Below are positions 1-34,536 of a stretch of 64,000 nucleotides of DNA, in pieces. Position 1 is the first letter of the stretch, and each line of letters starts with the position of its first letter. The notes below the pieces were generated by a model. It did not search any database. It was not told the DNA's origin and worked only from the letters and a program-made list of their open reading frames with translations. The DNA lies in IMG/VR virus record IMGVR_UViG_3300035703_000005, positions 62,001 through 126,000 of that record; one strand, given 5' to 3'. Made by a program: the position numbers and the translations under genes.

Positions 1-495
1 AAAATCCCAAGTTGCGGGGAAAAAAATTAATTTACCCTCTTCTGGTTTTATTTTAGTTCCATCTATAAATTCTGTTTCTCCGCCACCCTCTACATCATTT
101 AAATACCAAATAAAAGTTATTCTTCTAACACCATTGCAATCATCTCTACAAAAATCATGATGCCAATTATAAAAACCTTCTCCACCAATAGTTCTTTGTA
201 TTTGATATCCAGTATCGTTGAGATCTAAATCAGTTATATTAGTATATAAATTTTCAAGTAAATATTGTTTATATTCTTTTAATCCATCATTCAAAGACTG
301 GTAAAAGATTTTATCTTCCTTTTCCCAACCAGCCATATGGCTTATTGCAATGTCAGTAGATACTTTTACTTTATTATTAAGTCCACCTAAAGTTTTACCA
401 GAACATTTTCTAAGATCCCTTTCAAATTTATAAATAACATTCTTACAAAATTCACTAGTTAAAGCATTTTGTTTTTCCCATATAAATTTATTCAT
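1..495 (-). CDS. 2OG-Fe(II) oxygenase, 3' end cut by the window edge
   Basis: Manual translation MNKFIWEKQN...WHHD...RRITFIWYLNDVEGGGETEF...FFPATWDF; HxD and YLND-GGET motifs. Confidence 0.85.
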   Translation of the reverse strand, partial: MNKFIWEKQNALTSEFCKNVIYKFERDLRKCSGKTLGGLNNKVKVSTDIAISHMAGWEKEDKIFYQSLNDGLKEYKQYLLENLYTNITDLDLNDTGYQIQRTIGGEGFYNWHHDFCRDDCNGVRRITFIWYLNDVEGGGETEFIDGTKIKPEEGKLIFFPATWDF

Positions 496-1516: not shown

Positions 1517-2167
1517 TTATAAGTCAAGTCTTTTATTTTTCGATTGTATTCCATTCCAAACTTCTTGATCTAACCAATATTCATCAACATATTTAACATA
1601 TTTTTTATTGGGATCTTCGGTAATAAATTTGAAAATATCTGGATTATCATAATCAATAGGAAAATTTAAAATTTCACCAACCCATTTTAAATAATGTTGT
1701 TTATGTAAAAATAACGCTTCATTATCTAAAAAATGAATTTTAAACCCAGAAGGAATAAGAGTATTATAGTAATAATCTTGTGCAATTGGTGTTGTAATTT
1801 CTTTTCTAACTCTTAGTTGCTGTTGAGAATTAATATTAGAGTCTCTTACAATAATTGCAATTTGAACATTTATTCCAAAAGATTGGACTCGTTCTACAAA
1901 CTCTTTAATTTTTGGAACATATCTAACACCATCATAAAAAAATGGACAACTTACATTTGCTAACCAATGGTCGTATCCATCAAAATCTTTTTCTGTAACT
2001 TCTTCTGGATATACCCAATACTTTGCAAAATATTCTTCATCACTTGGAACCCAATACTTATCTAAAAGACTTTTCCAACCACCAACTTTAGGATGTGTGC
2101 TGAATATTCTACTAAACAAATGATTTCCAGATCCTTGAGGTCCAGTAATAATTAAAAGTTTTTTCAT
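1517..2167 (-). CDS. P-loop/sulfotransferase-fold protein, paralog of 2979..3602
   Basis: N-terminal IITGPQGSGNHLFSRIFSTHPKV. Confidence 0.6.
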   Translation of the reverse strand: MKKLLIITGPQGSGNHLFSRIFSTHPKVGGWKSLLDKYWVPSDEEYFAKYWVYPEEVTEKDFDGYDHWLANVSCPFFYDGVRYVPKIKEFVERVQSFGINVQIAIIVRDSNINSQQQLRVRKEITTPIAQDYYYNTLIPSGFKIHFLDNEALFLHKQHYLKWVGEILNFPIDYDNPDIFKFITEDPNKKYVKYVDEYWLDQEVWNGIQSKNKRLDL

Positions 2168-2982
2168 TATTTTTTTAGTACATCCATTCTATCAATCCAT
2201 AGATTATACATTTCTGATATTAAATTTCTATTAAATCCGGTTAGATTAAATTCATCATATAAATTTTTTATATTATCAAGTGTGTCTTCTTCATACAAAT
2301 ACCAATTAACGTCCCAAAAATACAAATTATTATGATTATAACTTGATGGTAAATTATTACCTACAAATTTATTAAATTTAAATTTATTAAATTTATTAAT
2401 CAATGAACTTTTAGTATCTTCATTTAAATTCATAAATTGTCTAAAATTTACTGGTAAAATTGGAATTATTTCTCTATGTTTATCATACTTAGTAGATTCT
2501 TCAGATAAAACACAGTTTCTAATTGATTTAAAAAGATTTTGATTAATAAACTGTATAATTCTCACATTTTTACATTCAGAAATTATGGAAAGAAGATCTT
2601 GATTATGATGAACTCGTACAAAATATAAAGATTCATCTTTACAAAGATCTTTCATTTGATGTAAAAATGAAAAGTCGATCCATATACCATCTTCGGCATT
2701 AATATTATTTAATAAATGATTTTTCCACAAAGAAATTTTTTCATTGATGTTCATTCCGTTTATAAAAATATCATCAGATAAGTATAAACAATTCATTAAA
2801 AAATTTCCTCCACTTCCAGAATCATACCAAACAACAATAATTTTATTACTGTTCGCATTAATTTTAAATATTAAACCTTCATCAATTTCTATTTTCGAAT
2901 CTTTATTTGAAAAATTTTTATGAACTATCGTATGTCCAAAATCAGACAAAAAAAGGGAAATATATTTTACATCTTCACTCAT
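2167..2982 (-). CDS. AT-rich hypothetical protein with a Gly-rich loop
   Basis: VVWYDSGSGGNFL motif; coupled to both neighbours. Confidence 0.5.
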   Translation of the reverse strand: MSEDVKYISLFLSDFGHTIVHKNFSNKDSKIEIDEGLIFKINANSNKIIVVWYDSGSGGNFLMNCLYLSDDIFINGMNINEKISLWKNHLLNNINAEDGIWIDFSFLHQMKDLCKDESLYFVRVHHNQDLLSIISECKNVRIIQFINQNLFKSIRNCVLSEESTKYDKHREIIPILPVNFRQFMNLNEDTKSSLINKFNKFKFNKFVGNNLPSSYNHNNLYFWDVNWYLYEEDTLDNIKNLYDEFNLTGFNRNLISEMYNLWIDRMDVLKK

Positions 2983-3602
2983 GATATTTTTTTTAATGAA
3001 ATTCCAGTTTTATTACAATTATCCAAAAAATATTCTTCTACATGATGAATATACTTATCATTAGGATCATTGGATAAAATTTCATCTACTCGGCAATCAT
3101 CCCATGCAATTGGTATGCCGACATTTAAGCTCTTTAGATAATCCTGTTTATAGAGATACAATAACTCGTAGCTTAAAAATATTGGATTAAAAAAATTTGG
3201 AAGTTGTTTCATGAACAGAGGCAAAGTACTTTCCTTTCTCAAACGATTTTGTTGATGTCTGAGAATATTTTGATCTCTACCGACTACTACTATTTGTGTT
3301 CCAATACCAAGGTTTTCAACTTCATTTACAAATGACATAATGTTTGGTTCCCATTTCTTTTCTTGAATACCAAGAGGGACACTGATACTGGTGAAAAAAT
3401 AATCATAAGTAGACCAATTAAAGTCTTTCAATCGAGATGGATCTTTCCAATACTCACAAAATGGTTCTGCAAATCTATGAGCTTCCCAATAGTTATCGAG
3501 AAGAGTCTTCCATCCAAATACTTTCGGATGTAATGAGAATATCTTAGACCAAAGATGATTACCGGACCCCTGTGGTCCGGTAAGGATTACCATTTTTTTC
3601 AT
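2979..3602 (-). CDS. P-loop/sulfotransferase-fold protein, paralog of 1517..2167
   Basis: ILTGPQGSGNHLWSKIFSLHPKV; shared C-terminal DPNxKY(I/V)xxVxEY. Confidence 0.6.
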   Translation of the reverse strand: MKKMVILTGPQGSGNHLWSKIFSLHPKVFGWKTLLDNYWEAHRFAEPFCEYWKDPSRLKDFNWSTYDYFFTSISVPLGIQEKKWEPNIMSFVNEVENLGIGTQIVVVGRDQNILRHQQNRLRKESTLPLFMKQLPNFFNPIFLSYELLYLYKQDYLKSLNVGIPIAWDDCRVDEILSNDPNDKYIHHVEEYFLDNCNKTGISLKKIS

Positions 3603-3853
3603 TTAAAAAATAACAAATAGATCAATCCTGGGATGATAATAAGAAACTGAGGAAGGAAGTTCATTACAATTGAAGGTTCTTTCCACTTTATTCCTACATA
3701 AGTCCAACCAGATGCAGCAATTAATTGTAGAATGCTATTCCAAGGGGTTAGTCCCAGTACGTGAAACACCATCGCAATGAGTATCAGACTGGCACTAACC
3801 CATTTAATTATACGAGTTTTATCTTTACTTCTTCGTCTTTCAATTGTACTCAT
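3599..3853 (-). CDS. small membrane protein (about 3 TM helices)
   Basis: Three hydrophobic segments. Confidence 0.6.
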   Translation of the reverse strand: MSTIERRRSKDKTRIIKWVSASLILIAMVFHVLGLTPWNSILQLIAASGWTYVGIKWKEPSIVMNFLPQFLIIIPGLIYLLFFK

Positions 3854-3870
3854 AATATAAAAGATTTATA

Positions 3871-4557
3871 TCAGACTGCAATAGCAGTATTCTTGTTACT
3901 AATTTCAAGAAGATCATAACGCATTTGTTCTACCATTGCAAGAATGCGATCTTGAACATCTGCAGCACCTTCTACAAGTTTCTCAAGTTTCCAACCACCA
4001 ATGTTAGCATGGAATCCTTCGTCTTTAGCAATAGCTGCATAACGTGAAGAGATAAACTCATCTTCTACACACTCAGCCATTTCGTTCCATACCGCCTCTG
4101 CACGACCCTCAGCAACGAGTTGATATGCAGCAAGAGCAGCAGGATCGGAAGATGCCCCATACTTGTCTAGGAGGGTGGCACCCTTAGCCTGAGGTGCAAC
4201 GGCTTCTGCAGCAAATGCAGCATCAACATCAACTTTCTCACCAGAAATATGCTCAATAACTTCCTTTACCATACGGAAGTGTTTCGCTTCATCTTGTGCC
4301 TGTTTGGTTAGTAACTCAAGTTCAGTAACATCCATAGATGCAGGAGCAGAAGCAACCTCAGCAGCAATTGCTTTCATGTTCATTGCTTCATTAACCATAC
4401 GACCACGAAAATGTTCGACCATATGTTCTTTACTTGGATTTGAAGCAAAGAAACGACGGACATTCATACGAGACTGATAAAAAAGTTCATCATTCTCTTT
4501 TTTAATTTTTTGTACAAATTCTTTTCCCGAAAGCATTTCAATAAAACTCCTATACAA
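3871..4557 (-). CDS. ferritin-like di-iron carboxylate protein
   Basis: E...DEAKH...E(GRA)...DEGFH, two ExxH motifs. Confidence 0.75.
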   Translation of the reverse strand: MYRSFIEMLSGKEFVQKIKKENDELFYQSRMNVRRFFASNPSKEHMVEHFRGRMVNEAMNMKAIAAEVASAPASMDVTELELLTKQAQDEAKHFRMVKEVIEHISGEKVDVDAAFAAEAVAPQAKGATLLDKYGASSDPAALAAYQLVAEGRAEAVWNEMAECVEDEFISSRYAAIAKDEGFHANIGGWKLEKLVEGAADVQDRILAMVEQMRYDLLEISNKNTAIAV

Positions 4558-4570
4558 TACTTTTACTTAT

Positions 4571-5149
4571 TTATTTAATAAGTGTTACAAGAATATCCGA
4601 AAATGTTTTTTCAACTAAAATGTTTTGATTAAAATTTTTACATATCCATTCCGAAGTAAAATATTCCCATACACAATTATTCAACATCCCAAATTCTAAT
4701 ATACAAGAATTTTGTTTCATAATCTCATTCAACATCATTCCACTATTTTTGTATGCAGAATAATTTGGGTATTGAATTTGAAATCCTCCAGCTTCATGCC
4801 ACCAAGCATAACTAATCATATCTGGACGATAAATCATTATGATCCAATCATCTGGAAACTTTTTACGTATTTTACCTAGATAGTAAGACCACTCATGACT
4901 CTTGATTAGTTTACATCCTTCGAATTCAGCCCATGCTTGATCAATATAATCCCCATCAAGAATTGGTTCAAACTCCATTTCAGGTCCAAAGTATGCACCT
5001 TTGTGTCCAGCATAACTATGATGAACATATTCACGTTCAGGAGTACGATCGGAGATATTCATACCAGACATCGTTTCTAATGTCTGGGCGATACCACTCC
5101 AACGGGATCCAGGAACTCCAGTAAAAAATATTCTCTTAGGTAATTTCAT
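4571..5149 (-). CDS. P-loop/sulfotransferase-like protein
   Basis: FFTGVPGSRWS; KSH; IIMIYRP. Confidence 0.55.
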   Translation of the reverse strand: MKLPKRIFFTGVPGSRWSGIAQTLETMSGMNISDRTPEREYVHHSYAGHKGAYFGPEMEFEPILDGDYIDQAWAEFEGCKLIKSHEWSYYLGKIRKKFPDDWIIMIYRPDMISYAWWHEAGGFQIQYPNYSAYKNSGMMLNEIMKQNSCILEFGMLNNCVWEYFTSEWICKNFNQNILVEKTFSDILVTLIK

Positions 5150-5684
5150 GAATCAAGAAAAATTAAATGAATACTTTGCAACAAAATGGAAAAGTAATCT
5201 AAATCAATATCTATACTCTGGGTGGAATCTGATTAATAATATTTCTGATGATGAGTGGGTTTTAGATGTTGGATGTGGACCAAATCCATTTAAAGGAAAG
5301 ATACAAAATTTAATTGGAATAGATCCTGCTTTTGATGAAGCAGATTATAAAGTAACTATAGATAAGTTCAAATCTAACAGAAAGTTTGATGTTGCCTTTT
5401 GTTTAGGTAGTATAAATTTTGGTCCTGGCGATAAAATTGTATCAGAAATAAATTCGTTAGTAAAGTTATTAAAACCTACTGCAAGAATTTATTGGAGATG
5501 CAATCCAGGAAGAAAAGATCATGAAAACAAAGATTGTGAGTTAATAAATTTTTTCCCGTGGACTTTTGAACTTCACAACAAATTTTCAAATCATTTTGGA
5601 TTTGAGTGTACTGATTTAAAATGGGATTATAATCATAGAATTTATGCAGAATGGGTTAGATCTTCCATCTTTAATTCTATATAA
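5148..5684 (+). CDS. class I SAM-dependent methyltransferase
   Basis: VLDVGCG, GID, FDVAFCLGSINF. Confidence 0.8.
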   Translation: MNQEKLNEYFATKWKSNLNQYLYSGWNLINNISDDEWVLDVGCGPNPFKGKIQNLIGIDPAFDEADYKVTIDKFKSNRKFDVAFCLGSINFGPGDKIVSEINSLVKLLKPTARIYWRCNPGRKDHENKDCELINFFPWTFELHNKFSNHFGFECTDLKWDYNHRIYAEWVRSSIFNSI

Positions 5685-7056: not shown

Positions 7057-8106
7057 TTAGTTATTTTTTAAATATTTTTTATACTCCTTTTCCGCATCTA
7101 TAATAATTTTATCCTTATATTTACTAGATAAAAATGTCCACTGAGACCATGTGGAAATATTTACTTTTGAATTGGCTATTGTAAAAAAATCTACTAGTGC
7201 TATTGAACATTTATCTAGTGGATAAAAATATAAATCGTTATTTTTGGAAATAAACTTTTTATCAAAAAAATCCAAAAATTCATCTATATAATTTTTATAT
7301 GTAACAATATTATTTGGATATTTTTCAATATAATGAGAAAGTAACTCTAATGGAACATCTGTACTCAGATAAATTTTTTGATTTTTATTTCTTTTTAAAA
7401 TTTTATCAATCAAATAAAAATAAAAATCATCCGGAAAAACAGATCTTTTTACTATATTATCTTGCATATAATTACTATTATATTCGATTATTTTTCCATA
7501 AAAACTTAATAATTTATCCTTATCAATATAAACGGAAGAAGATTTAATAAATTCTTGAGTTATACTCATACTAAAACCTCTTCTTAAGTGAATGGAAATT
7601 ACATCGGAAAAATTATTTTTAAAATAATCATCTACTATTGCATTTTTAAATTTTATTTCCCTTATCTTGTAAAATAACTCATCCATGCAATGATATCTAA
7701 TTCCCCTTCTAGAAATATTGTTAATTGAAAAATTAAAATAAAAATCAGTTTCAGTATCATCTATGCAATCATTATTGTTCATCAATTTTAAAAAACTATC
7801 AAATTCTATTGAAGAAAATTCTTTTAGTGTATCATAAGATACATTTTCCAATCTTGTATTTGGTAAATCTATGAATAATAATTCTGGCCACCAATATTCG
7901 GGAACAATCAAATCATTTCTTTTAATAAAGAGTGAAACTTGATGGATCATGGCCCAAAAAACTAATCTATCTCCAAAAGCAGTATCAAAGAGATTTATTT
8001 CCGTAAGTTTTTGCCACCAAGGATGGGAACTATATTTTCCATTAAGTTTCAAACCTTTTGACCCACCCTCCATAGGATTAGTCATGTATATTTTATTATT
8101 TTTCAT
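7057..8106 (-). CDS. fucosyltransferase-like GT-B protein (NodZ/GT23-like), paralog of 8139..9068; start approximate
   Basis: SIHLRRG, IYLSTDVP, DFFTIANS. Confidence 0.55.
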   Translation of the reverse strand: MKNNKIYMTNPMEGGSKGLKLNGKYSSHPWWQKLTEINLFDTAFGDRLVFWAMIHQVSLFIKRNDLIVPEYWWPELLFIDLPNTRLENVSYDTLKEFSSIEFDSFLKLMNNNDCIDDTETDFYFNFSINNISRRGIRYHCMDELFYKIREIKFKNAIVDDYFKNNFSDVISIHLRRGFSMSITQEFIKSSSVYIDKDKLLSFYGKIIEYNSNYMQDNIVKRSVFPDDFYFYLIDKILKRNKNQKIYLSTDVPLELLSHYIEKYPNNIVTYKNYIDEFLDFFDKKFISKNNDLYFYPLDKCSIALVDFFTIANSKVNISTWSQWTFLSSKYKDKIIIDAEKEYKKYLKNN

Positions 8107-8138
8107 TATTTTGCAGTAAATAATTTTCCCGTTTAAAA

Positions 8139-9068
8139 TCAAAAAACATTTCCAATAACTGTTTTTTCTTTGTAAATAGATGCAATTTCTGTCCATCCAG
8201 ATTGATTTGTGACCAATATATCAGAATGACATAAAGCAAAAAAATCGAATAAATTTATAAGAACTTGATCAATATTTGTAAAGTAACTATTTTTTACTAA
8301 GTTAATATTATCACTAAAAAAATTTAAGTACTCTTTAAAATAATTTTTTCTTGTCACTATGTTATTTGGATATTTCCTCAAATAATGACCTATAAATTCA
8401 TCAGGTACGTCATAACTTAAATAAATTTTTTGATTTTTATTTTTGCTAATGAGATCTTCTATAATGTTAAAATAATAAAAATCTGGAGTTATATCAAATA
8501 ATGGGTTTGGATTTTTTTCCAAACATTTTTTATAATAAGACTTTATAGTTCTAATATCAAGATAAGTACTTAATTCATCAATATACTTTTTATTAGGTTT
8601 AGTACCTATGCCTCTTCTGATATGAATAGAAGCAACATTAGAAAATGTATTTTCAAAAAATAAATTTATGTTAGAATTTTTAAACTTTAAATTTCTTAGA
8701 GGGTGGAAAAATTTTTCGGGGATTGACTTTTTTCCAAATACATGAGACAATAATTTAATAGAAGGAATGCTTGTATAAAAATTATTATTATTAAATTCTG
8801 AAGTTGAATTTTCAGTAAATAAAGAAATATCGAATAATTTATATTTTTTTATGATTTCATCTTTACTAATTTCAATATCTGTTACAGAGGGCAAAGATAA
8901 AAATAAAAATTCTGGCCAATAATAATCCTGAAGGGTTATAGTTCTATTTGGTACTTTTTTTATATAATAATAAAATATCAATAAGTAGGTAAGTCTTTCA
9001 ACAAAAGAATTGTCTTTTTCATGAGAATTCACAAGAGTTGAAGTTAATAATATTTCTTTAATATTCAT
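8139..9068 (-). CDS. fucosyltransferase-like GT-B protein (NodZ/GT23-like)
   Basis: SIHIRRG, IYLSYDVP, DFFALCHSD, SGW. Confidence 0.55.
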   Translation of the reverse strand: MNIKEILLTSTLVNSHEKDNSFVERLTYLLIFYYYIKKVPNRTITLQDYYWPEFLFLSLPSVTDIEISKDEIIKKYKLFDISLFTENSTSEFNNNNFYTSIPSIKLLSHVFGKKSIPEKFFHPLRNLKFKNSNINLFFENTFSNVASIHIRRGIGTKPNKKYIDELSTYLDIRTIKSYYKKCLEKNPNPLFDITPDFYYFNIIEDLISKNKNQKIYLSYDVPDEFIGHYLRKYPNNIVTRKNYFKEYLNFFSDNINLVKNSYFTNIDQVLINLFDFFALCHSDILVTNQSGWTEIASIYKEKTVIGNVF

Positions 9069-17863: not shown

Positions 17864-19288
17864 TCAATTAAAAACCTTTACGCCATATTTATTTTCCCAT
17901 TCTTTACAATCTTTCTCATCATTCGCCATAGGTTTTCCTTTAATATTCAAACTAGTATTCAATAACATGGGACAACCAGTTTTTTCATTCCACAATTTCA
18001 AAAGATCATAAAGTTCTGTATTCTGCTGTCTATTTACGGTTTGAACTCTACTTGTCTTATCTATATGAACAATCGCAGGGAACTTTTTAGAGTATCTACA
18101 TTTCACTGCATACTGCATATATGGTGAAGAATTCGTAGGCATCCTAAAATAATCATGCACATATTCCTCCATAATTACAGGAGCAAATGGTCTGAACTGT
18201 TGTCTCTGTTTTATATCGTTGACCATTGACTTGATCTTTGGATCTCTAGGATCAGCAAGCAAACTACGATTACCTAATGCCCTAGGACCAAACTCTGCAC
18301 GACCTCTGGCGACCCCACAAAGACCATGATCCATCAAGTGATTAACAATTTCTTCGTTTGATGCAACTGGTTTAATATGATATCCAAGATAAGGTCCATG
18401 CCAATCAATATGTTTCTTTTTGTGTGCAAGCACAGCACCAATTGCAGATCCATTATCTCCAGGCGCAGGCATAATCCACACATTATCATAATAATAATAT
18501 GCAATTGGATTTGCAACACAATTCAATGCACATCCACCCATTAATACTAAATTTTTACTTTTTACTTTACTAGATGCCACTTGCATGATATCTCTAAACA
18601 TTGTTTCATAAATGCTTTGAGTTGCAGCGGCAATATTAAAAGTGTTTTTAATGTCTGGTCTCCAATCAGAACATCCTCTATGTAAATTTTTAGTAAATGT
18701 AGCCGTTCTATATCCTATAAAATCATCATAGATTGCATCTTCACAGACTCTTTTGTCCCCATAAGCAGACATGCCCATGAGAATATATTCTTCTTCATTT
18801 GGTTTTAGTCCACACCTTTGGGTCATTGCAGAGTACCAAAGTCCGACGCTGTGTGGATATCTACGTTGAAATTTAAGTTTTAGTTTATTACCTTTTGCTT
18901 CCCAGATTGTAAGTGTTTGAAATTCTCCTATAGCATCAATAACCACCACGCAACACTCGTCAAACTGACTGGTGAAATAACCAGCACAAGCATGAGTATA
19001 GTGATGATCATAATACTTGATCGGAGCATCAACATACTTCTTGACATTTTGAATCCATCCTTGACCTGCAAGAAGTTGTCTAAGTGTTTTCTTGTATGGA
19101 TTCTCATACCAACAGACCAGTTCTGGTTTTCCAAATTTTAATGCATAGTTAATTATGCCATCATTTAACTGAGGATCATTTTTGATACCACTAAATCTTT
19201 CACTTTCACTTGCAAAGACTAATGTATCATTAACAAATACGGAAAGTGCGGCATTATGACTTTCTGATGATATTCCCCAGGTTATCAT
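17864..19288 (-). CDS. carbamoyltransferase (NodU/CmcH family)
   Basis: SERFSGIKND, HHYTHA, GGCALN, EFGPRALGNRS, LLNTSLN. Confidence 0.95.
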   Translation of the reverse strand: MITWGISSESHNAALSVFVNDTLVFASESERFSGIKNDPQLNDGIINYALKFGKPELVCWYENPYKKTLRQLLAGQGWIQNVKKYVDAPIKYYDHHYTHACAGYFTSQFDECCVVVIDAIGEFQTLTIWEAKGNKLKLKFQRRYPHSVGLWYSAMTQRCGLKPNEEEYILMGMSAYGDKRVCEDAIYDDFIGYRTATFTKNLHRGCSDWRPDIKNTFNIAAATQSIYETMFRDIMQVASSKVKSKNLVLMGGCALNCVANPIAYYYYDNVWIMPAPGDNGSAIGAVLAHKKKHIDWHGPYLGYHIKPVASNEEIVNHLMDHGLCGVARGRAEFGPRALGNRSLLADPRDPKIKSMVNDIKQRQQFRPFAPVIMEEYVHDYFRMPTNSSPYMQYAVKCRYSKKFPAIVHIDKTSRVQTVNRQQNTELYDLLKLWNEKTGCPMLLNTSLNIKGKPMANDEKDCKEWENKYGVKVFN

Positions 19289-22645: not shown

Positions 22646-24124
22646 TCAGAAGGTAAACTTCGTCTGAATCACGCCACCAACATTGCTGGAAGCACCAGAG
22701 AATGCTTGGTTGTTGGAGACATAGAACAGAGCGGGAGTGACACTGATATTATCACTTACGCGATAACGATAGAACACTTCCCACATCGTTGCGTTTGCAG
22801 GGAGTCCCTGTGCGTTGCCAGGTTGTCCGATAGCAAATCCAGCAGCATTACCCTTCGCAAAGACATCGCTCCACTGAAGACCTACCATCCAGGTTTGAGA
22901 GTTGGTTGCATTGGTAGGAGTAGAAGGTCCTGCAACATAGTTCCAACCATAAGCAGCAGAAACAGAAGGAACCCAACCACTCTGCAGAGGTTGCCAGTAA
23001 GCATTGATTGCATAACCGTTAGAACCCTGATTTCCAGCAAGAGTTCCAGTAGCACCATTCAGACCATTGAAGGTACGAATACGAGTGCCTTGAGTGCCGT
23101 AACGATAACCGAAAGCAACACCCCAGTTAGGAGCACGATAACCAAGTTGTGCCAGAGTATTCAGACCACCAGTGGAGTTGAATACACCAGTCGAACTATT
23201 GTCACCATCTTGAGCAATATAGTTAAGACCAGCAACGATACCACCTTTCTTACCAGGTTGGACATACTGAATACCGAAACCTTGACCAGTTGCCTTGTTG
23301 TAGACACCAGGAGCACCAGCAACAGCAAAGAAGTCTAGAATGTCTGCCTTATAAGCAGAAGGAATCCATGCCATCTCAGTGTTACGAACCAGAGCACCAG
23401 CAGTCAGAGTTACACCCTTAGCAAGGGCAGGGAAACTGTAGTATAGACGGTCAATGATTACACCATCGGCAGTGGTTTCTGCCTTATCCAGTTTAAAGAG
23501 TGAACCAGAGGAACCAAAAGGTTGACTGGAGAAATTACCACTACGCAGACGAGTGCGAAGCAGATCCTTACCAGTAAACGAAGTATCAAAATTCAGACGG
23601 AGGTCATAGTTGAAAGCAGTGTTTCCAACTTGAGTTCCATTACGAAGTTGAGCACCACTTACACCACCAAGAATGAAGTTTGCTTCACCACGAAGTTTGG
23701 TAGTAGTGGAGAACTGTTGTGCTTCCAGAACACCAACTTTCTTTTCCAGACCATCAACGCGACCACGAAGGACAGCAAGTTCCGATTGGAATTCGTTAAG
23801 TAGACGACGAAATTCGTCAGTGGTTTCAGTCACACGTTCAAGGCAAGCATTCAGAAGTGCTGCTGCCTCAAAACGAGTCATTGCCTTTCCACCACCAAAA
23901 GTTCCGTTAGGGTAACCAGCAACACACCCATAACGCTCTACAAGGTTAGAAAGTGCCTGATATGCCCAATCGGTAGGTTGGACATCAGAGAATTGTGAAA
24001 CACTCGTAACCTGACTCTCAGAGTATTGATTGACTTCTACCATATTCAGATCTGCGGCATTCGCAGCAACAGGAGCAACCATTCCCAGAGCAACAGGTGC
24101 GAGCATCAGTTGTTTGAGTTTCAT
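22646..24124 (-). CDS. cyanobacterial SLH-domain outer-membrane porin (Som/OprB-like)
   Basis: FSDVQPTDWAYQAL..LVERYGC, QFSTTTKLRGE, C-terminal Phe. Confidence 0.95.
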   Translation of the reverse strand: MKLKQLMLAPVALGMVAPVAANAADLNMVEVNQYSESQVTSVSQFSDVQPTDWAYQALSNLVERYGCVAGYPNGTFGGGKAMTRFEAAALLNACLERVTETTDEFRRLLNEFQSELAVLRGRVDGLEKKVGVLEAQQFSTTTKLRGEANFILGGVSGAQLRNGTQVGNTAFNYDLRLNFDTSFTGKDLLRTRLRSGNFSSQPFGSSGSLFKLDKAETTADGVIIDRLYYSFPALAKGVTLTAGALVRNTEMAWIPSAYKADILDFFAVAGAPGVYNKATGQGFGIQYVQPGKKGGIVAGLNYIAQDGDNSSTGVFNSTGGLNTLAQLGYRAPNWGVAFGYRYGTQGTRIRTFNGLNGATGTLAGNQGSNGYAINAYWQPLQSGWVPSVSAAYGWNYVAGPSTPTNATNSQTWMVGLQWSDVFAKGNAAGFAIGQPGNAQGLPANATMWEVFYRYRVSDNISVTPALFYVSNNQAFSGASSNVGGVIQTKFTF

Positions 24125-24311: not shown

Positions 24312-25133
24312 TTAAGAAGTTTGTTGTTGAGCCTCGGATGTTCTTCCCAAATAAGGATCATAGTCCATAAGTTTTTCAATTTCTAAGTCAGAACCACGAG
24401 TTTCCCAAAGATTACGAAGACCATCGTGAGATCCACGATGAAAAATTTCAATGTGTTCTGGGTGAATAGAAGAACCCAATTCAATTTTATAAAGGAAAAG
24501 AGGAATAGCAAAAGTATTTCCAGAATTATAAATCAAGTCATCAGCAACTGCACGAGGTTTGATTGCATAATCAAGTTTATATTTTTCTCCACGACAATGG
24601 AACTTTACAACTTTTTCAGCATGATGACGAGTAATTATATAACAAGCTGTAGAAAAGTCGTTTACAAATCTACGATGAAGATTTACATGTAAAGTTCCTG
24701 GACAAATGATTGCAAGTTGAACTACATCATAATCATATGGAAGTCGTGCAATGAATTGATTCCAAGTGAAGTTCCAATACTTTGCAACACTAATGTCAAC
24801 ATCGTCTTCCATAACAATACAATATGGAGAATCGGATGTTTCCAAATAATGTTTAAGAAGTTTAAGGTGCGAAGTCACACAACCAATCTCACCCGAACTC
24901 ATATTTTCCGGATATCTCCCATGAATAATATCACTTAGATCATCATTTCTACCATCATAAGCAGAAATACGTTCATAATTCTCCACTTCCCAATAAGAAA
25001 ACATATCTTCCATATATTGTTTTCTTTCTGGTTGATCATCCAGATTAATATAATAGATAGGGCCCATGCCCTTAAGTTTATAAGAGGCTTTGTTTTTATC
25101 CATTACAAGAGATTCCATCAGATAACTTCCCAT
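24312..25133 (-). CDS. glycosyltransferase family 25
   Basis: YINLD..ER, GEIGCVTSH, MEDD. Confidence 0.85.
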   Translation of the reverse strand: MGSYLMESLVMDKNKASYKLKGMGPIYYINLDDQPERKQYMEDMFSYWEVENYERISAYDGRNDDLSDIIHGRYPENMSSGEIGCVTSHLKLLKHYLETSDSPYCIVMEDDVDISVAKYWNFTWNQFIARLPYDYDVVQLAIICPGTLHVNLHRRFVNDFSTACYIITRHHAEKVVKFHCRGEKYKLDYAIKPRAVADDLIYNSGNTFAIPLFLYKIELGSSIHPEHIEIFHRGSHDGLRNLWETRGSDLEIEKLMDYDPYLGRTSEAQQQTS

Positions 25134-25972
25134 CCTTCACAATAAAGATCATCAGTAATCTTGTCCGCATAAGCAGGACCAAACCACATCTTAGGTGCTA
25201 CAATCTTACCAACACCACGTTGCAACCAAGCACCCCACCAAGACAATGAAGAGTTGGCGATAATACCACCCTTACAATTTGACATAATACACAAATCAAC
25301 ATAAGGAGTATAAGATCCATCAGGATACTTTTCCTCTGGAGTAGAAACATAAAAACGATCTGGTTTGAAGAGTTCTTGTTCAAGAACCCACTCAGGAGAA
25401 TCTGAAACTATTACAACTTCTTGATCCTCAGGGAAGAGTTTCAAAGCTTTTTCATAATACTCAATAGGTTGTGGTGGATGTTGATCCGAACACTTGGTAT
25501 AAGACCACTCAAATCCACGAGCATCTACAAGGTTAGGATCGCCGCGACGAACATGAAGAAAAATTGGATCTTTAAGTTCATCAAGAAATCCTTTTACTGG
25601 AATCATCAAGTCATCATGAAAAGTAAAATCTTTAAAAATTTCGTCTTTGATGTGTTCAAAGTATTTTTCTGTTTGAAAAAATCCTTGAATAGATACATCA
25701 TTAGGACAAAGTTCGAGAAGTTCTTTGTCAAAATGAAACTGTTTTTCTTGAACAATGGGTGCAAATCCTCTATCAAGAATATACAAATTTGTCGGTTTTA
25801 CAGACTCAAGGGTAAAACAATTTGATAAACTATAATTATCAATTCTACGAGTATTGTATGGAGGGATACACCAGTCATATCCTTTTGCAGCTGCAATACC
25901 CCGTAGTGCTGCATACTGAAACATCTGGTTTCCTAAACGACCAATGTTTCCTAGTTCATTAAACGCTAACAT
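25118..25972 (-). CDS. glycosyltransferase family 11
   Basis: GRLGNQMFQYA, HVRRGD, ANSSLSWWGAWL. Confidence 0.92.
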   Translation of the reverse strand: MLAFNELGNIGRLGNQMFQYAALRGIAAAKGYDWCIPPYNTRRIDNYSLSNCFTLESVKPTNLYILDRGFAPIVQEKQFHFDKELLELCPNDVSIQGFFQTEKYFEHIKDEIFKDFTFHDDLMIPVKGFLDELKDPIFLHVRRGDPNLVDARGFEWSYTKCSDQHPPQPIEYYEKALKLFPEDQEVVIVSDSPEWVLEQELFKPDRFYVSTPEEKYPDGSYTPYVDLCIMSNCKGGIIANSSLSWWGAWLQRGVGKIVAPKMWFGPAYADKITDDLYCEGWEVI

Positions 25973-26780
25973 TTAATTGTTCTCCTCTCTTTTTAACGTA
26001 CTCTTGTTGTTGATAGTATTGTAATAATTTAGGTGCATCCCAAGTTCTAATATTTTGCCAGAGATTATGATTATCCATAAACTTTGGATTGTGATAATGA
26101 GAATTGAAAGTTCTACCGTGTTCAAAATGATAGATGTCTTCATTCACTCTGGCAACTTTAAATCCAAAAGAGTTTAACCTAAAATAAAACTCACAGTCTT
26201 CTGCTCCCCAAGATATAAAGTTTTCATTCCAAAGACCAGCCTTAATTTGAACTTCTTTTTTTAACATTTGACCCCAACCAATAGAAGAGGCAACTCTAAA
26301 CTTAGAATCGTTTAAAACATTAAAATTGAAATTAGAATCTAAAAATTCAAATAAAAGTTCTTCAGAATAATTTACTGCCCATTGATATACTCCGCATCCA
26401 AAGGGGTATACGACATCTACATTTTCAGAAATTATTGCATCATATGCAATTTCATAACTACGTTTTGGTAGTATGATATCTACATCATGATTATAAATGA
26501 TTTCAGTCTCAGAAGCAACTAGTAAATCATTTAAAATTTTTGTTTTATGAAAAAACTTTTCGTCACTCTCTTCGAAAATATGTGTAAGATTTTTAGTATC
26601 TGCATATTTGGCAATAACTGGCAAAGCTCTAAACTTGAACTTAGAGTGACTATCAACTTCTTTAAGTATTATTTTTGATTCTGGAAAATTTTTTAGAAGA
26701 TATGTAACTGAAGTAACTACATTTTTAAGTCTATCTTCAGACTCAATACGACATGGTAATAAAAACGTTAAATTTTTCAT
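25959..26780 (-). CDS. GT-A glycosyltransferase (GT2/GT7-like)
   Basis: HDVD, WNENFISWGAED. Confidence 0.8.
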   Translation of the reverse strand: MKNLTFLLPCRIESEDRLKNVVTSVTYLLKNFPESKIILKEVDSHSKFKFRALPVIAKYADTKNLTHIFEESDEKFFHKTKILNDLLVASETEIIYNHDVDIILPKRSYEIAYDAIISENVDVVYPFGCGVYQWAVNYSEELLFEFLDSNFNFNVLNDSKFRVASSIGWGQMLKKEVQIKAGLWNENFISWGAEDCEFYFRLNSFGFKVARVNEDIYHFEHGRTFNSHYHNPKFMDNHNLWQNIRTWDAPKLLQYYQQQEYVKKRGEQLNVSV

Positions 26781-27673
26781 GTTTCTGCGGGAACTGGAGA
26801 TGGGTCATTATAAATTTTTATCCACCTTTCAGGGATCATATCTTTCATATTATAGTGAGCGTAAGCAGGTCCAAACCATGGTTCAGGAGCAATTACTTTA
26901 CCTGAATCATTTTGTAACCATGCGCCCCACCAAGAAAGAGAAGAGTTGGCGATAATTGCACCACCACAAAGAGACATAAGACAAAGATCAATGTAAGGGA
27001 CTGAAGCACCGTCTCCGAAGGTCTCATAAGAAGAATCGGAAAAATGGAAACGATCTCCTTGCAACCAATCTTGACGTTTACACCAGTCAATAAGATCGGA
27101 AACTACAATAACATTCTTGTCTTCTGGAAATTGTTTCAGGGCTTCAAGATAATAATCAACTTTACAAAGTGGGTGATATTCTTGTACCATCTGATAAGAC
27201 CACTTTTCGCCTCTTCTGCCAGTCAGATTAGGAGATCCACGACGAACATGAAGGAAGATACAATTTTCTCTACCACCTAATGAATCAATGTATTCCTGAC
27301 AAGGTTCCAGATAATAACTCTTAAAAGTAAAATCTTCTCGAATACTATCAGCAATAGCCTCAAAATATTTCTCTGTCTGAAAGTTACCTGAAAAGTTTGT
27401 ATTGTCCTCACACTTATTGAAGATTTCTTCATTGAAGTGCATATCACGATACTCTACAGTCTTGTAGAATGGTTCTCCAGTATTCTTTTCTAGATCACAA
27501 TTAGTTAATTCAAATGCATCAAACAATCCATAATTGTCTAAACGATCTGCATCTGGTCCAGGAACCACCCAATCAAATCCTCGATTTGCAGCAAGACCGC
27601 GAATAAATGCGTATTGAAACATTTGGTTTCCAAGGCGCCCCTCGTTACCAAGTCCTTTAAATGAAACAGCCAT
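26777..27673 (-). CDS. glycosyltransferase family 11
   Basis: GRLGNQMFQYA, HVRRG, ANSSLSWWGAWL. Confidence 0.92.
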   Translation of the reverse strand: MAVSFKGLGNEGRLGNQMFQYAFIRGLAANRGFDWVVPGPDADRLDNYGLFDAFELTNCDLEKNTGEPFYKTVEYRDMHFNEEIFNKCEDNTNFSGNFQTEKYFEAIADSIREDFTFKSYYLEPCQEYIDSLGGRENCIFLHVRRGSPNLTGRRGEKWSYQMVQEYHPLCKVDYYLEALKQFPEDKNVIVVSDLIDWCKRQDWLQGDRFHFSDSSYETFGDGASVPYIDLCLMSLCGGAIIANSSLSWWGAWLQNDSGKVIAPEPWFGPAYAHYNMKDMIPERWIKIYNDPSPVPAET

Positions 27674-28533
27674 TACTTACTCCACTCTTGAATAATCCAA
27701 CGATCAGGTACGATATCTGAAGTATCTAGGTGAGTCATTGCAGTACCAAACCACTTCTTAGGATCTGGAGCAACTATCTTACCTCTATCGTTCTGTAACC
27801 ATGCACCCCACCATGAAAACGATGAGTTTGCAATGATAGCGCCAGAACAAAGACTCATTAGACACAGATCAACCTGTGGTAAAAGAGTATTCTGCATTTG
27901 GCCAGTACCATCAATAGTACGGTACGTATATCTACCATTACTTTCATTAAACAAGAAACGATCTTGTTTGAAGAACTCTTGGGATTTGCACCATTTAATA
28001 TCGTCTGTGAATACGAAACACTGAGTATCATCAGACCAATTACTCAACGCTTCTTCAAAAAATGAAATTGGGAGAATTGGATGGTATTGTTCTCTTCCGA
28101 TATTATCACTTTGTCTAATATGAAGAAAAATAGGAGGAGTATCCAAAGAATCAATGTACTCTTTACAAGGAGTAAGGTAATCCTTTTTAAATGTAAAATC
28201 TTCACGAATCTCTTTATCAATATGACTGAAATATTTTTCAGTTTGAAAATAACCATCAAGACTTACATTATCTGGACATTCGTCAAAAAATTCTGGAATA
28301 AAACAATGATCATTCTCCTGAATGTACTCACCATTCACAAATCCAATATTTAGAGGTTTAACATTTGTAAGTTCAAATGTTTCAAAAAGACCATAATTAT
28401 CTTTATGATCATAAGTATCAGGGGGAATGCACCAATCATATCCTCGTTTTGCAGCAATACCTCTGAGTGCTGCATACTGGAACATTTGATTACCTAGGCG
28501 ACCATTACTTCCTAGTCTATTATAGCCAATCAT
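27673..28533 (-). CDS. glycosyltransferase family 11
   Basis: GRLGNQMFQYA, HIRQSD, ANSSFSWWGAWL. Confidence 0.9.
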   Translation of the reverse strand: MIGYNRLGSNGRLGNQMFQYAALRGIAAKRGYDWCIPPDTYDHKDNYGLFETFELTNVKPLNIGFVNGEYIQENDHCFIPEFFDECPDNVSLDGYFQTEKYFSHIDKEIREDFTFKKDYLTPCKEYIDSLDTPPIFLHIRQSDNIGREQYHPILPISFFEEALSNWSDDTQCFVFTDDIKWCKSQEFFKQDRFLFNESNGRYTYRTIDGTGQMQNTLLPQVDLCLMSLCSGAIIANSSFSWWGAWLQNDRGKIVAPDPKKWFGTAMTHLDTSDIVPDRWIIQEWSK

Positions 28534-29675
28534 AAATTAATTGCAATTGTTTTGATATCTTCAGGTGGTTTACCAAACTTGACTCTATCACCATACTCTC
28601 CAGTCAAAAATTCTTTTACTTGAGAAATAATAGAATCAACATCATCAATGTATACAATGTATCCTGCATCTAAAAGATCTTGGCACAAAATATATTGTTG
28701 ACTCTCGGTAAGAATATCAGTTCCTTTCTTATATGAAATATAACTGAAATAGTAGGGACGATTATCTTTATTCTTTTCTACAAAATACTTTTTAAGAAAC
28801 TTGGAATGTTCGTAGTTAAAGTTATCCGTAGTTTCTCCTAGATTATAAGTTAATCCAAGTTTTTTCGCAAATGCAGCAAAAGATCTGTTATCCCTTGGAA
28901 GACATGGACCACCGAATCCATATCCATATCTGAGATATTTAGTTCCTACTCTAGAATCGTTTCCAATTGCATTTAAAACAATCTCAATCTCTTCTTCCAT
29001 TCCAGCCATGGTCATCACTTCACCAACCATATTTGCATAACTGATCTTGGTTGTGAGATAACAATTAACCGCAAGTTTCACAAGTTCTGCAGCAGTCAGA
29101 GACATGCGACTAATTTTGGGTTTGATAACCTGAATCTTTTTATACATCTCGGAGAGATAATCCATTACCTCTTCATTATCCCCACCAATCAGAACCATAT
29201 CCGCATGAGTGAGATCTTTAATAATTGAACCTTGAGCAATAAACTCAGGATTATAAATTACACTCACGCCATAAGGACGAAGTGTATCTTGGAATCTTTC
29301 ACAATCTCCTGGATTTGTAGTGCATCCAACAACTAAAGTTTTACCTTGAACATTTGAAGATTCTTGGAAATCACGAACAACATCCCACACAGAACTTACG
29401 TCATAAGATCCATCAGGAGAAGATGGAGTTGCAACAAGAGTAAAGACAATATCACACTCCGCAATAACTTTCTTATTGTCAGTAGTTGCTTCAATATTCG
29501 TTGCTTCTTTTAAGTGTTCAGTAACATGCGGTTCTGCAGTTTGAATAATTTTTTTATTGAGGCTATCTACATAATCCTCACGAATATCAGAGACAAGGAC
29601 ATCATATCCTGCATTTTCCATGAGAAGTGCAAGACAAATTCCAAGTCTTCCTGCGCCGATTAATCCAATTTTCAT
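28530..29675 (-). CDS. UDP-glucose/GDP-mannose dehydrogenase family protein
   Basis: GAGRLG, NPEF, AELVK, GFGGPCLPRD. Confidence 0.9.
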   Translation of the reverse strand: MKIGLIGAGRLGICLALLMENAGYDVLVSDIREDYVDSLNKKIIQTAEPHVTEHLKEATNIEATTDNKKVIAECDIVFTLVATPSSPDGSYDVSSVWDVVRDFQESSNVQGKTLVVGCTTNPGDCERFQDTLRPYGVSVIYNPEFIAQGSIIKDLTHADMVLIGGDNEEVMDYLSEMYKKIQVIKPKISRMSLTAAELVKLAVNCYLTTKISYANMVGEVMTMAGMEEEIEIVLNAIGNDSRVGTKYLRYGYGFGGPCLPRDNRSFAAFAKKLGLTYNLGETTDNFNYEHSKFLKKYFVEKNKDNRPYYFSYISYKKGTDILTESQQYILCQDLLDAGYIVYIDDVDSIISQVKEFLTGEYGDRVKFGKPPEDIKTIAINL

Positions 29676-30463
29676 AGTTTGAATGTAGGAATTTCCGTCA
29701 TTTTATGTTTATTTTGCATATGAAACTTCTGATACACGTTAATTGCATTGATCTGTTCTTCACTCAAGAACATTGGATCTTCATGTAATCCCTTTTCCAT
29801 GACCCATTCTAACATTGAATAGGAAGTTCCAATTTGGTCTTCATCCGTTCTACCATCATCCCACAAACCATCTGTAGGAGGTGCAGAAATAATTCTTTCA
29901 TCTACTCCAAGATGTTCACCAAGCATCCATACTTCGGTCTTATAAAGATCTGCAATAGGAGCAATATCAATACCACCATCACCATACTTAGTGTAGAAAC
30001 CTACACCATAATCTTCAACCTTATTACCAGTACCAACAACAATACCATTTACGGAAGTTGCAATCTGATAAAGAGTTATCATGCGAAGTCTTGAACGAGT
30101 ATTAGCTTGTGCAAGTTTATTTGTTGCAAAGTTTTCCCCAATATCATTAGAAATTGTCTGGAGAAAAGAATCATAGACCGAACTCATATCAGTCTTGATA
30201 AAAGTTACATTATTAAATTTTTTAGTTAGTTGTTCGCCATGAGCATCAGAAAGAGACTCCTGATTCTCAAGTTGATTAATAGGCATTCCAACCACATAAG
30301 TTGGCATACCAGTCAAAGCACAAAGAGTAGAAACCACGGAAGAATCAATTCCTCCAGAAATTCCCACTACAAGACTCTTGATTTTGGGATGAGTAAGACA
30401 ATACTCAGAAATCCATCCTACAATGCGATCTTCTAACTCATCATAGTCTTTGATACGATTCAT
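29672..30463 (-). CDS. nadE: NH3-dependent NAD+ synthetase
   Basis: GISGGIDS, RLRM, GTGNKVE, FYTKYGDGG, PTDGLW. Confidence 0.95.
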   Translation of the reverse strand: MNRIKDYDELEDRIVGWISEYCLTHPKIKSLVVGISGGIDSSVVSTLCALTGMPTYVVGMPINQLENQESLSDAHGEQLTKKFNNVTFIKTDMSSVYDSFLQTISNDIGENFATNKLAQANTRSRLRMITLYQIATSVNGIVVGTGNKVEDYGVGFYTKYGDGGIDIAPIADLYKTEVWMLGEHLGVDERIISAPPTDGLWDDGRTDEDQIGTSYSMLEWVMEKGLHEDPMFLSEEQINAINVYQKFHMQNKHKMTEIPTFKL

Positions 30464-31245
30464 GATTCTTTTACCTTGGCGAGAATTACAGTGTTTTCGT
30501 AATCTTTATTCGTGGTGAACTCAAATCGTTCACTCATCCTTTCGGTAAACTTATTATAGTAGAAATCATTAAAGTTGACAAGATTGTAGATAATGTAAGC
30601 AAACTTAGAATTGGATACCAATTTATCATAATAATTTACTTGAGTTTCATAATCACACTCGGAAAGAGCATAATTACTAATAAACAAATCTACATCCTTT
30701 ACCTCTTCAAGTTCATCACAAGGAACAAATTTACACTTTGCATAAAGTTCAGGAAAGTTTTTGAGATACTTTTCTTGAACTGCAACAGCTTCTGGGAGAT
30801 CAACTAAAATATATTCATCAAAATCACAGACAACACTCAAGGTCTTACAAAGTCCGCCATACCCGCCACCAACTTCAACTACACGACTAATAGGATATTC
30901 TCCAAGAAGAGTCGCCATCTCAAATACATTTTTAATGTATCGGATTGTAGTGGGAGAGATTTTACCCGTTTCTGGATAAGAGAACCTATCGGGAGTCCCG
31001 ATAGTATCGTTCTCTTTAAAAGCTTCTAGATTTTCAAATAGTGCATCTTCAGCCATTTCCATGGCAACTTGAAGATACTCTGTACCTTGTCTAGGAGTTA
31101 CGTGTTCAAGAATATTTTTATATCCTTGAAGTGATTTAAATTTTGCAAATATTTCATCATCAGCAACTGCACTGCGGCAAGTCTCTAGATAATCAATTGC
31201 AATTTGTTCTTCGGCTTCCCAGCCTTTATAAGTACTCATTTCCAA
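30460..31245 (-). CDS. putative sugar O-methyltransferase
   Basis: VEVGGGYGG, VDLPE, ISNYALSE. Confidence 0.8.
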   Translation of the reverse strand: MEMSTYKGWEAEEQIAIDYLETCRSAVADDEIFAKFKSLQGYKNILEHVTPRQGTEYLQVAMEMAEDALFENLEAFKENDTIGTPDRFSYPETGKISPTTIRYIKNVFEMATLLGEYPISRVVEVGGGYGGLCKTLSVVCDFDEYILVDLPEAVAVQEKYLKNFPELYAKCKFVPCDELEEVKDVDLFISNYALSECDYETQVNYYDKLVSNSKFAYIIYNLVNFNDFYYNKFTERMSERFEFTTNKDYENTVILAKVKES

Positions 31246-34494: not shown

Positions 34495-34536
34495 ATTTTG
34501 ATCAAAAATAATAATCTCAATAGTATATATTATACT

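Follow-up and report, generated by a model that had tools for sequence, protein, structure and literature searches.

A putative oxygenation, group-transfer, and methylation gene module of T4-like cyanophages with sporadic counterparts in Oxalobacteraceae

What might a phage do with seven tightly packed genes, six of whose products belong to no Pfam, PHROG, or NCBIfam family? The gene cluster in question lies at positions 1517 to 5684 of a 64,000-nucleotide stretch of DNA, hereafter the window, that covers bases 62,001 to 126,000 of the 248,835-bp IMG/VR virus record IMGVR_UViG_3300035703_000005, which CheckV rates as complete. The source is a freshwater T4-like cyanophage, among whose genes are those for PsbA (psbA), ribonucleotide reductase of class I, a carbamoyltransferase, and a porin of the OprB/SLH type. 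A reading made from the DNA letters alone (the sequence-only reading) had proposed that the cluster encodes an oxidation, group-transfer, and methylation pathway. Synteny in phages and bacteria and the fold assignments described below support that idea, whereas the accompanying statements about P-loops, MiaE and aldehyde-deformylating oxygenase (ADO), codon usage, and a search in cyanobacteria needed correction. The reading that we tentatively favor is a mobile, co-inherited tailoring module that oxygenates, transfers a group to, and methylates one acceptor, drawing on a 3'-phosphonucleotide donor, most likely the 3'-phosphoadenosine 5'-phosphosulfate (PAPS) of the host. The seven genes are as follows, with product lengths in amino acids (aa) and functions as predicted:

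1517..2167, minus strand: g1, 216 aa, sulfotransferase-fold protein, GPQGSGNH paralog A
2167..2982, minus strand: g2, 271 aa, variable accessory protein, probably of sulfotransferase fold
2979..3602, minus strand: g3, 207 aa, sulfotransferase-fold protein, GPQGSGNH paralog B
3599..3853, minus strand: g4, 84 aa, small membrane protein, DUF6552
3871..4557, minus strand: g5, 228 aa (221 aa from the likely start at 4536), ferritin-like di-iron oxygenase or oxidase
4571..5149, minus strand: g6, 192 aa, sulfotransferase-like protein
5148..5684, plus strand: g7, 178 aa, class I S-adenosylmethionine (SAM)-dependent methyltransferase, divergent from g6

The tight packing noted earlier is real: the six minus-strand genes overlap or lie at most 34 nt apart (successive gaps of -1, -4, -4, +17, and +34 nt), and the overlaps suggest translational coupling. 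The divergent genes g6 and g7 share 2 nt of their start codons (5148-5149; likewise L002:2840-2841 in a relative), which leaves no intergenic promoter space, and this divergent overlap is conserved in relatives with the gene order of the window. Promoter and terminator scans of the module region stayed at chance level, and no T4 late-promoter motif was found near the module. The terminator scan flagged a perfect inverted repeat (10 bp, 5-nt loop; 3559-3583) within the P-loop codons of g3 (LTGPQGSGN), which is probably a coding coincidence.

The motifs reported for the individual proteins were likewise recovered. The two GPQGSGNH paralogs, g1 (2120-2143) and g3 (3555-3578), are 43% identical; GVPGSRWS lies in g6 (5096-5119) and SGSGGN in g2 (2773-2820); the ferritin-like g5 has two ExxH motifs (DEAKH, 4279-4293; DEGFH, 4009-4023) in addition to two further Glu ligands; g7 has SAM motif I (LDVGCGPN, 5262-5285); and the 84 residues of g4 hold two to three hydrophobic segments. 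The remark that g5 has host-like codon usage did not survive. Its GC content at third codon positions (GC3) is 0.252, like that of its neighbors (0.12-0.29), and its overall GC content of 0.416 is due to a first-position value (GC1) of 0.635 and 16% Ala; because GC3 equals that of the neighboring phage genes and the high GC stems from GC1, the codon usage of g5 is not host-like. Translation of g5 probably begins at Met8 (window 4536), since homologs align from residues 6 to 8. Family scans of all seven proteins (Pfam, PHROGs, NCBIfam) returned nothing usable except DUF6552 for g4.

Whether the genes belong together can be judged from their company elsewhere. A scan of viral contigs with g5 returned 129 relatives, and we examined 80 loci (g5 identity of 72-96%) by BLAST mapping and clustering of all open reading frames (ORFs). 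The g1/g3 family is present in 78 of these loci, usually as both paralogs, g7 in 67, g6-type genes in 33, g2-type genes in 27, and g4 in 24, kinase-type modules (described below) included. In layout A, that of the window, the order is g7(-), g6, g5, g4, g3, zero to five copies of g2, and g1; this range of g2 copy number is seen among freshwater relatives, and g2 is absent from the marine and bacterial versions. The marine layout B has the order [g6 g6] g7 g5 with g1 and g3 convergent, and it lies between tail-fiber or other virion-structural genes and gp13, gp14, and gp15. In layout C (locus L093), the order is carbamoyltransferase, g6, g4, g7(-), g5, a gene of the adenosine 5'-phosphosulfate (APS) kinase family, g3, g1, a class I amidotransferase/Peptidase_C26 gene (Peptidase_C26 match, 3.9e-13), and a HAD/PNK3P phosphatase gene. 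The module of the window phage is about 100 kb away from gp15 (at 167.8 kb of the record), compared with its place beside gp13 to gp15 in the marine layout, and therefore moves as a unit that is not tied to one neighborhood.

Several other genes accompany these loci. Many layout A relatives carry one or two radical SAM/SPASM genes after g1 (L008:4093-5346; G000:C1:50045-51211), in which the SPASM domain is N-terminal to the radical SAM core, and some 12 kb upstream of the window, the window phage encodes a homolog with 35% identity. A 2-oxoglutarate-Fe(II) oxygenase gene at the edge of the window (1-495, minus strand) recurs close to the module in several relatives, and L093 has three genes of this kind upstream. 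A homolog of the carbamoyltransferase gene of the window (17864-19288, minus strand) is the immediate neighbor of g6 in L093.

The module is not confined to viruses. The chromosomes of Massilia atriviolacea and Janthinobacterium sp. UMAB-56 (60-62% GC) carry g5, g1, g6, and g7 within 9 kb, with identities of 62-63% for g5, 56-57% for g1 (the paralog type retained in bacteria), 38-40% for g6, and 36-37% for g7. Both clusters also have a cupin gene between g5 and g1, an alkaline-phosphatase-superfamily enzyme, and an ATP-binding cassette (ABC) gene with an importer-type ATPase domain only; two low-GC contigs from metagenome-assembled genomes (MAGs) likewise hold cupin, g1, g5, and amidotransferase genes together. 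Since g5 occurs in only 1 of 301 sampled genomes of Oxalobacteraceae, the cluster is sporadic there. The Janthinobacterium cluster adds a 2H phosphoesterase, and the Massilia cluster adds a glutaminyl cyclase fused to a 5'-nucleotidase C-terminal domain. We considered the bacterial "sulfatase" (L082, L084) as a link to sulfur and rejected it: the protein has no C/S-x-P-x-R formylglycine motif and looks like a phosphodiesterase or phosphotransferase, with PYTSASH and a Thr nucleophile. The long N terminus of the bacterial ABC ORF is an artifact of high-GC ORF calling.

The sequence-only reading had allowed for the genes failing to co-occur in other genomes; they do co-occur, in 80 viral loci, in several gene orders, and on two bacterial chromosomes, which is more than a chance arrangement. 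The synteny search that it suggested for phages and cyanobacteria was productive in uncultured viral contigs; in cyanobacteria it would have failed, the cellular carriers found being Oxalobacteraceae. The viral carriers are T4-like phages from marine and freshwater metagenomes. Megablast and tblastn searches of g5, g3, and g7 against 50,697 phage records gave no match, while a gp13 control found 1,781 records; a g6-like query had one match in the same records, a single-cell-derived "Marine virus" fragment. None of the four core families tested (g5, g1/g3, g7, and g6) was found in cultured phages. Searches with g5 and g3 collected 2,113 and 1,486 proteins, respectively, and the Atlas cluster of g3 has approximately 9,900 members, of which 99% are viral.

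The candidate metal ligands of g5 are E50 (helix 36-62), E83xxH86 (helix 70-98), E143 (helix 132-156), and E173xxH176 (helix 160-188), which gives the E, ExxH, E, ExxH pattern on two antiparallel helix pairs, and these residues are invariant or at least 90% conserved in relatives down to 19-25% identity. The predicted model (pLDDT, 93.9) shows the 221 aa folded into nine helices, with additions at both termini, and places the ligand positions on the two helix pairs. Profile matches among PDB structures are led by an ADO-like protein (3.3e-6), a VlmB homolog (6d9f; 3.5e-6), and R2lox (3.7e-5); bacterioferritin and rubrerythrin profiles follow below these oxygenases, at E values of about 0.01. 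Of the comparators named in the sequence-only reading, MiaE, the tRNA ms2io6A hydroxylase, scored 14.9 bits against a cut-off of 27 and no ADO-family Pfam match was found, although ADO-like structures do match at the profile level. The protein reaches no Pfam or NCBIfam threshold, and Foldseek against the PDB returned nothing at an E value of 1e-3 or lower. The heme-oxygenase-like di-iron oxidases (CADD, UndA, SznF, and HrmI) have an H-x3-D-x2-H pattern on the last ligand helix, which is absent from g5. A plain storage ferritin or rubrerythrin, the other outcome against which the pathway idea had been set, is not what we see: ferritins are bare four-helix bundles of about 140-180 aa, to which rubrerythrin adds a rubredoxin domain, whereas g5 has extra helices and no rubredoxin domain, and its best matches are substrate-oxidizing enzymes. 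Judged from its sequence and predicted model, g5 is an enzyme-type di-iron protein of a new family, and a narrow one (103 clusters at 50% identity among 1.8 billion representatives). Its nearest characterized relatives either oxygenate nitrogen (VlmB and AurF) or act on acyl or aryl substrates (ADO and PaaA). In a quick, midpoint-rooted tree of g5, the T4-like cyanophage sequences form one supported clade nested among kinase- and cupin-associated forms, and the two bacterial proteins pair at the base of that larger clade, from which we draw no direction of transfer.

The proteins that had been called P-loop proteins do not look like nucleoside triphosphatases, as they lack the Walker A Lys and have (in g2 and g6, probably have) a sulfotransferase fold instead. 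The pattern GxxxxGK[ST] is absent from their loops, which read GPQGSGNH in g1/g3, PGSRWS or PGSGWAK in g6, and SGSGGNF in g2, with no in-register Lys-Ser/Thr. In the fold comparison of g3, sulfotransferases rank above kinases, and the sulfotransferase alpha/beta fold, that is, a P-loop-kinase-derived core plus an acceptor-binding extension, was recovered. The g1/g3 family alignment has invariant GPQG-GNH, R109-D110, and Q117-Q118-R120. An invariant Arg resembling that of the 3'-phosphate-binding (3'-PB) motif of sulfotransferases is present as R109 in g1/g3 and R108 in g6, placed by the model at the end of strand 101-108 before helix 111-122; the position of the 3'-PB Ser is taken by an invariant Q117 in g1/g3 and by S/C113 in g6. 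The g6 family further has the P-loop PGS(R/K)W, with a basic residue that is present but shifted (R/K16 or K19), and an invariant K83-S84-H85 triad preceding R108...S/C113. We take this combination of basic loop residue, K-S-H triad, and Arg...Ser/Cys to resemble the arrangement in cytosolic sulfotransferases (SULTs). Bacterial homologs of g6 match Sulfotransfer_3 over model positions 106 to 142 below the cut-off of 27 bits (18.8 and 14.5 bits; E values of 0.004 and 0.11), the Massilia homolog is named "Sulfotransferase family protein" in UniRef, and a neighboring viral Atlas cluster of g6 carries Sulfotransfer_3/1. The variable g2 has the motifs GSGGxFLxNCLxLSD, FxNxxLFxxxR, and WDxNWY, and its low-confidence Atlas model has Sulfotransfer_1/3 proteins as named neighbors (TM scores of 0.43-0.49), so that g2 probably also has a sulfotransferase fold. 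Alignments by hhalign among the g1/g3, g6, and g2 profiles were not significant, and phmmer and profile searches of g3, g6, and g7 against PDB sequences returned nothing meaningful. Overall, it is well supported that these proteins work like sulfotransferase-fold group transferases, but not that they are canonical sulfotransferases.

The g7 family has the SAM-binding motifs of class I, with invariant VLDVGCGPN and GIDP, its relatives (and only they) give sub-threshold matches to Methyltransf_23/31/25/11/12, and the Massilia homolog bears the NCBI name "class I SAM-dependent methyltransferase," a class to which g7 probably belongs by its sequence. The membrane protein g4 matches Pfam PF20189 (DUF6552) with 44.6 bits against a cut-off of 27 (1.9e-11) over 71 of 78 model positions.

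Which donor would such transferases use? The strongest contextual argument comes from the APS-kinase-family gene of sister modules. The L093 kinase, a 142-aa protein encoded between g5 and g3, has a true Walker A motif (GLPGAGKT) and matches PF01583 with 39.8 bits against a cut-off of 21.1, and all PDB matches of the kinase domain are APS kinases. This kinase has 108 relatives in viral contigs; of 80 loci that we inspected, 19 have it no more than 5 kb from g3-, g6-, or g7-type genes, often abutting g3, and only two have it together with g5. A PAPS-making type of 3'-kinase is thus a recurrent partner of sulfotransferase-fold proteins, which points to PAPS or a PAPS-like donor, and carriers without the kinase must rely on a host-made donor, which favors PAPS. 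In L099-type loci (L099:4995-5789), the kinase is fused to an HxGH nucleotidyltransferase domain resembling nicotinamide mononucleotide adenylyltransferase, and these modules have no di-iron gene. Between g6 and a g2-like gene in L099 (2644-3306) lies a 220-aa ORF with H-x-D ... H motifs, for which nothing was found in the PDB; by these motifs, it may be a double-stranded beta-helix oxygenase replacing g5.

The analysis shows that the genes are inherited together, which folds and which metal-ligand and PAPS-site-like motifs they encode, and that sister modules are linked to an APS-kinase-family gene. The pathway that we tentatively favor would run as follows, with the donor, the order of steps, and the acceptor being what we infer. 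In the cytoplasm, g5 would oxidize the acceptor, by carbon hydroxylation or nitrogen oxygenation as its relatives VlmB, AurF, ADO, and PaaA do. The g6 protein, the g1/g3 pair, and the variable g2 would next move a group, in all likelihood the sulfate of host PAPS, from a 3'-phosphonucleotide donor; g7 would add a methyl group; and g4 would serve as a small membrane partner. A sugar or glycoconjugate made during infection is our leading guess for the acceptor. This guess draws on a GDP-fucose pathway and at least four fucosyltransferases in the phage, on the NodU-type carbamoyltransferase that abuts g6 in layout C, and on the varying copy number of g2, as is seen for acceptor-specific decorating enzymes. 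The glycan island of the window (24312-34557, minus strand) encodes a GT25 protein, three GT11 fucosyltransferase-like proteins, a GT2/GT7C-like protein, an O-methyltransferase-like protein, a GT10 fucosyltransferase, an epimerase/reductase, and the following enzymes:

28530-29675, minus strand: UDP-glucose dehydrogenase
29672-30463, minus strand: NAD synthase
33433-34557, minus strand: GDP-mannose 4,6-dehydratase

Several observations weigh against this reading. The g1/g3 proteins have an invariant Gly12 (24 of 24 sequences) where sulfotransferases hold the catalytic Lys or Arg of the 5'-phosphosulfate-binding (PSB) loop; hhalign places this Gly opposite the Arg of genuine Sulfotransfer_3 proteins from Massilia and Janthinobacterium genomes. 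A PSB loop with catalytic Lys/Arg directly before S-G is therefore absent from g1/g3, which lack one defining feature of canonical sulfotransferases. No module protein reaches the threshold of a curated sulfotransferase profile (Sulfotransfer_1/3 were also searched in the phage genome), and hhalign scores of the module profiles against a profile of three genuine sulfotransferases lacked significance, although the short local alignments obtained are in register and count in favor of the reading. The fold search with g5 was split between heme-oxygenase-like and ferritin-like enzymes. On the donor side, 61 of the 80 kinase loci show no module genes nearby, no APS kinase was found in the window phage or within 6 kb in any of the 80 g5-anchored loci, and no ATP sulfurylase was found in the five kinase-carrying phages searched. 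As for the acceptor, the glycan proposal is based on context, the glycan island is 20 kb away from the module, and the marine relatives have their module among tail-fiber and neck genes instead.

An unlikely but credible alternative is that the module makes or tailors a diffusible small molecule, such as a secondary metabolite or antimetabolite, with N-oxygenation among its steps and with O-sulfonation and methylation as tailoring or leaving-group chemistry rather than polymer decoration. The nearest g5 relatives of known chemistry are the N-oxygenases VlmB and AurF, and the metal-binding cupin that adjoins g5 and g1 in the bacterial clusters and the two MAG contigs recalls the di-iron and cupin pairs typical of amino-acid-derived N-oxygenation and N-N chemistry. 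The 62-63% identity of g5 between phages and betaproteobacteria suggests a universal, well-defined substrate, and freshwater relatives add radical SAM/SPASM enzymes. However, we saw a scaffold-forming enzyme (nonribosomal peptide synthetase, polyketide synthase, or ligase) in none of the layouts, T4-like cyanophage loci lack the cupin, and the bacterial ABC gene has only its importer-type ATPase domain; polymer decoration agrees better with the variation in g2 copy number and with the glycans and carbamoyltransferase in the surroundings.

It is also conceivable, although rather improbable, that the same architecture moves a group other than sulfate from a PAPS-like donor, for example, a 3'-phospho-nucleoside-diphosphate-phosphoramidate as in the O-methyl phosphoramidate (MeOPN) pathway of Campylobacter, and that the methyltransferase methylates the transferred group. 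The absence of the sulfate-activating PSB Lys/Arg from g1/g3 speaks for this. In Campylobacter, the Cj1415-Cj1417 pathway makes cytidine diphosphate-phosphoramidate 3'-phosphate (PMC11800397). Sister modules hold APS-kinase-family, class I amidotransferase/Peptidase_C26, and HAD phosphatase genes as well as the L099 fusion of kinase and HxGH nucleotidyltransferase, enzyme types that match Cj1415-Cj1417 and the methyltransferases of that system; bacterial clusters add the phosphodiesterase-type alkaline-phosphatase-superfamily enzyme and a 2H phosphoesterase or 5'-nucleotidase. The likeness to the Campylobacter jejuni MeOPN genes (Cj1415-Cj1422) thus extends over the APS-kinase-family 3'-kinase, the nucleotidyltransferase, the amidotransferase, methyltransferases, dedicated transferases, and a PAPS-like donor. 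Set against it, no glutamine kinase-type gene was seen, the donor genes are absent from the window, and the MeOPN system has no di-iron enzyme. DUF2972 is the Campylobacter family that the Atlas flagged for g2; it gave no match at E values up to 10 in the window phage or four other carriers. The MeOPN transferases Cj1421 and Cj1422 presumably belong to it. Most carriers, the window included, are without donor-synthesis genes and would need a host-made donor, which favors PAPS, and g6 keeps its SULT-like K-S-H and Arg...Ser pattern.

A bolder version of this idea, to which we give similarly little credence, would see in g1/g3 a novel branch of the sulfotransferase fold, viral almost throughout, that lost the sulfate-activating Lys/Arg and moves a group other than sulfate. 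The PAPS-like 3'-phosphonucleotide donor of that group would come, in sister phages, from the APS-kinase-family enzyme, sometimes in its HxGH-fused form. Together with the di-iron oxygenase of a new family and the methyltransferase, this branch might furnish the glycans of host or virion with a hitherto unknown decoration, methylated and of phospho or sulfo type, and so alter the cell surface during infection by abundant uncultured cyanophages.

Still less probable is a posttranslational modification of protein, for instance, hydroxylation followed by sulfation or methylation of virion proteins such as tail fibers, which would alter adsorption or stability. The position of the marine module and the fold, which resembles that of tyrosylprotein sulfotransferases (TPSTs; compare PMC2938197), fit this possibility. 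The module is nevertheless about 100 kb from gp15 here, the bacterial clusters adjoin no structural or phage gene, and there is no conserved gene for a candidate substrate that accompanies the module throughout the layouts; the high g5 identity between phages and bacteria argues against a phage-specific protein substrate. Finally, it is very improbable that there is no pathway at all, but rather a hyperplastic segment of unrelated small genes with an iron-storing or peroxide-detoxifying ferritin or rubrerythrin as g5 and inactive or structural P-loop-like proteins: Joint Genome Institute pipelines do label some g5 homologs "rubrerythrin," bacterioferritin and rubrerythrin do give the weak g5 profile matches mentioned above, and six of the seven proteins do lack a curated family, but the set co-occurs in three phage layouts and two bacterial chromosomes, the motif residues are strictly invariant in every family, g5 best matches substrate-oxidizing enzymes and has helices beyond the ferritin bundle without a rubredoxin domain, and the overlapping genes suggest translational coupling.

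How does the favored tailoring module compare with known systems? For the transferases, the closest are the PAPS-dependent sulfotransferases (TPST1/2, the olefin-synthase/CurM sulfotransferase domain, heparan-sulfate NDST and 3-OST, and the cytosolic SULTs), from which g1/g3 differ in having Gly for the PSB Lys/Arg and Gln for the 3'-PB Ser; the module proteins are also short, at about 190-270 aa, and their families are almost exclusively viral. For g5, the closest are ferritin-like di-iron oxygenases and oxidases (VlmB, 6d9f, AurF, cyanobacterial ADO, PaaA/C, R2lox, MiaE, and DUF455), but g5 forms its own narrow family, and its helix arrangement aligns equally well with heme-oxygenase-like enzymes. 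As a set, the genes recall the decoration of rhizobial Nod factors, which involves the NodH sulfotransferase, PAPS synthesis by NodP/Q, the NodS methyltransferase, the NodU carbamoyltransferase, and the NodZ fucosyltransferase. When the module and its relatives are pooled, they share with this set sulfotransferase-fold proteins, an APS-kinase-family gene, a SAM methyltransferase, a NodU/CmcH-type carbamoyltransferase (L093), and fucosyltransferases (window). The likeness that we see is one of enzyme types rather than of sequence-level orthology, and Nod systems have no di-iron oxygenase.

A literature search found no paper describing the module. Its folds are known; the novelty lies in how they are combined, in the changed active site of g1/g3, in the di-iron family, and in the distribution. 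Should a glycan or metabolite indeed be methylated and sulfated (or tagged in another way) by the module in infected cells, cyanophages would have a new class of auxiliary metabolic function that bears on the surface chemistry of the host, on superinfection, and on the cycling of sulfur or organic matter. Two enzyme families are of interest in themselves, the new one of di-iron oxygenases and the one of sulfotransferase fold whose active site is altered, and the homologous clusters of Massilia and Janthinobacterium, which can be cultured, bring the question within reach of experiment before any such phage is isolated.

The surroundings of the module have features of their own. Two paralogous ORFs (7057-8196 and 8139-9068, minus strand; 379 and 309 aa) share an IH(L/I)RRG motif reminiscent of HxRRxD in fucosyltransferases; neither has a match in Pfam or NCBIfam, and because they have no homolog in the 80 related loci, they are outside the conserved module. 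An array of 29 tRNA genes occupies 36054-46467 (minus strand), where ARAGORN also calls a putative permuted "tmRNA*" (42509-42808) that overlaps a tRNA-Met gene. The GC content of the window is about 0.35 and falls to 0.28-0.30 in the first 12 kb; the phage-encoded OprB-family carbohydrate porin with its S-layer homology (SLH) domain (22646-24124, minus strand) has a GC content of 0.466, well above that of its surroundings.

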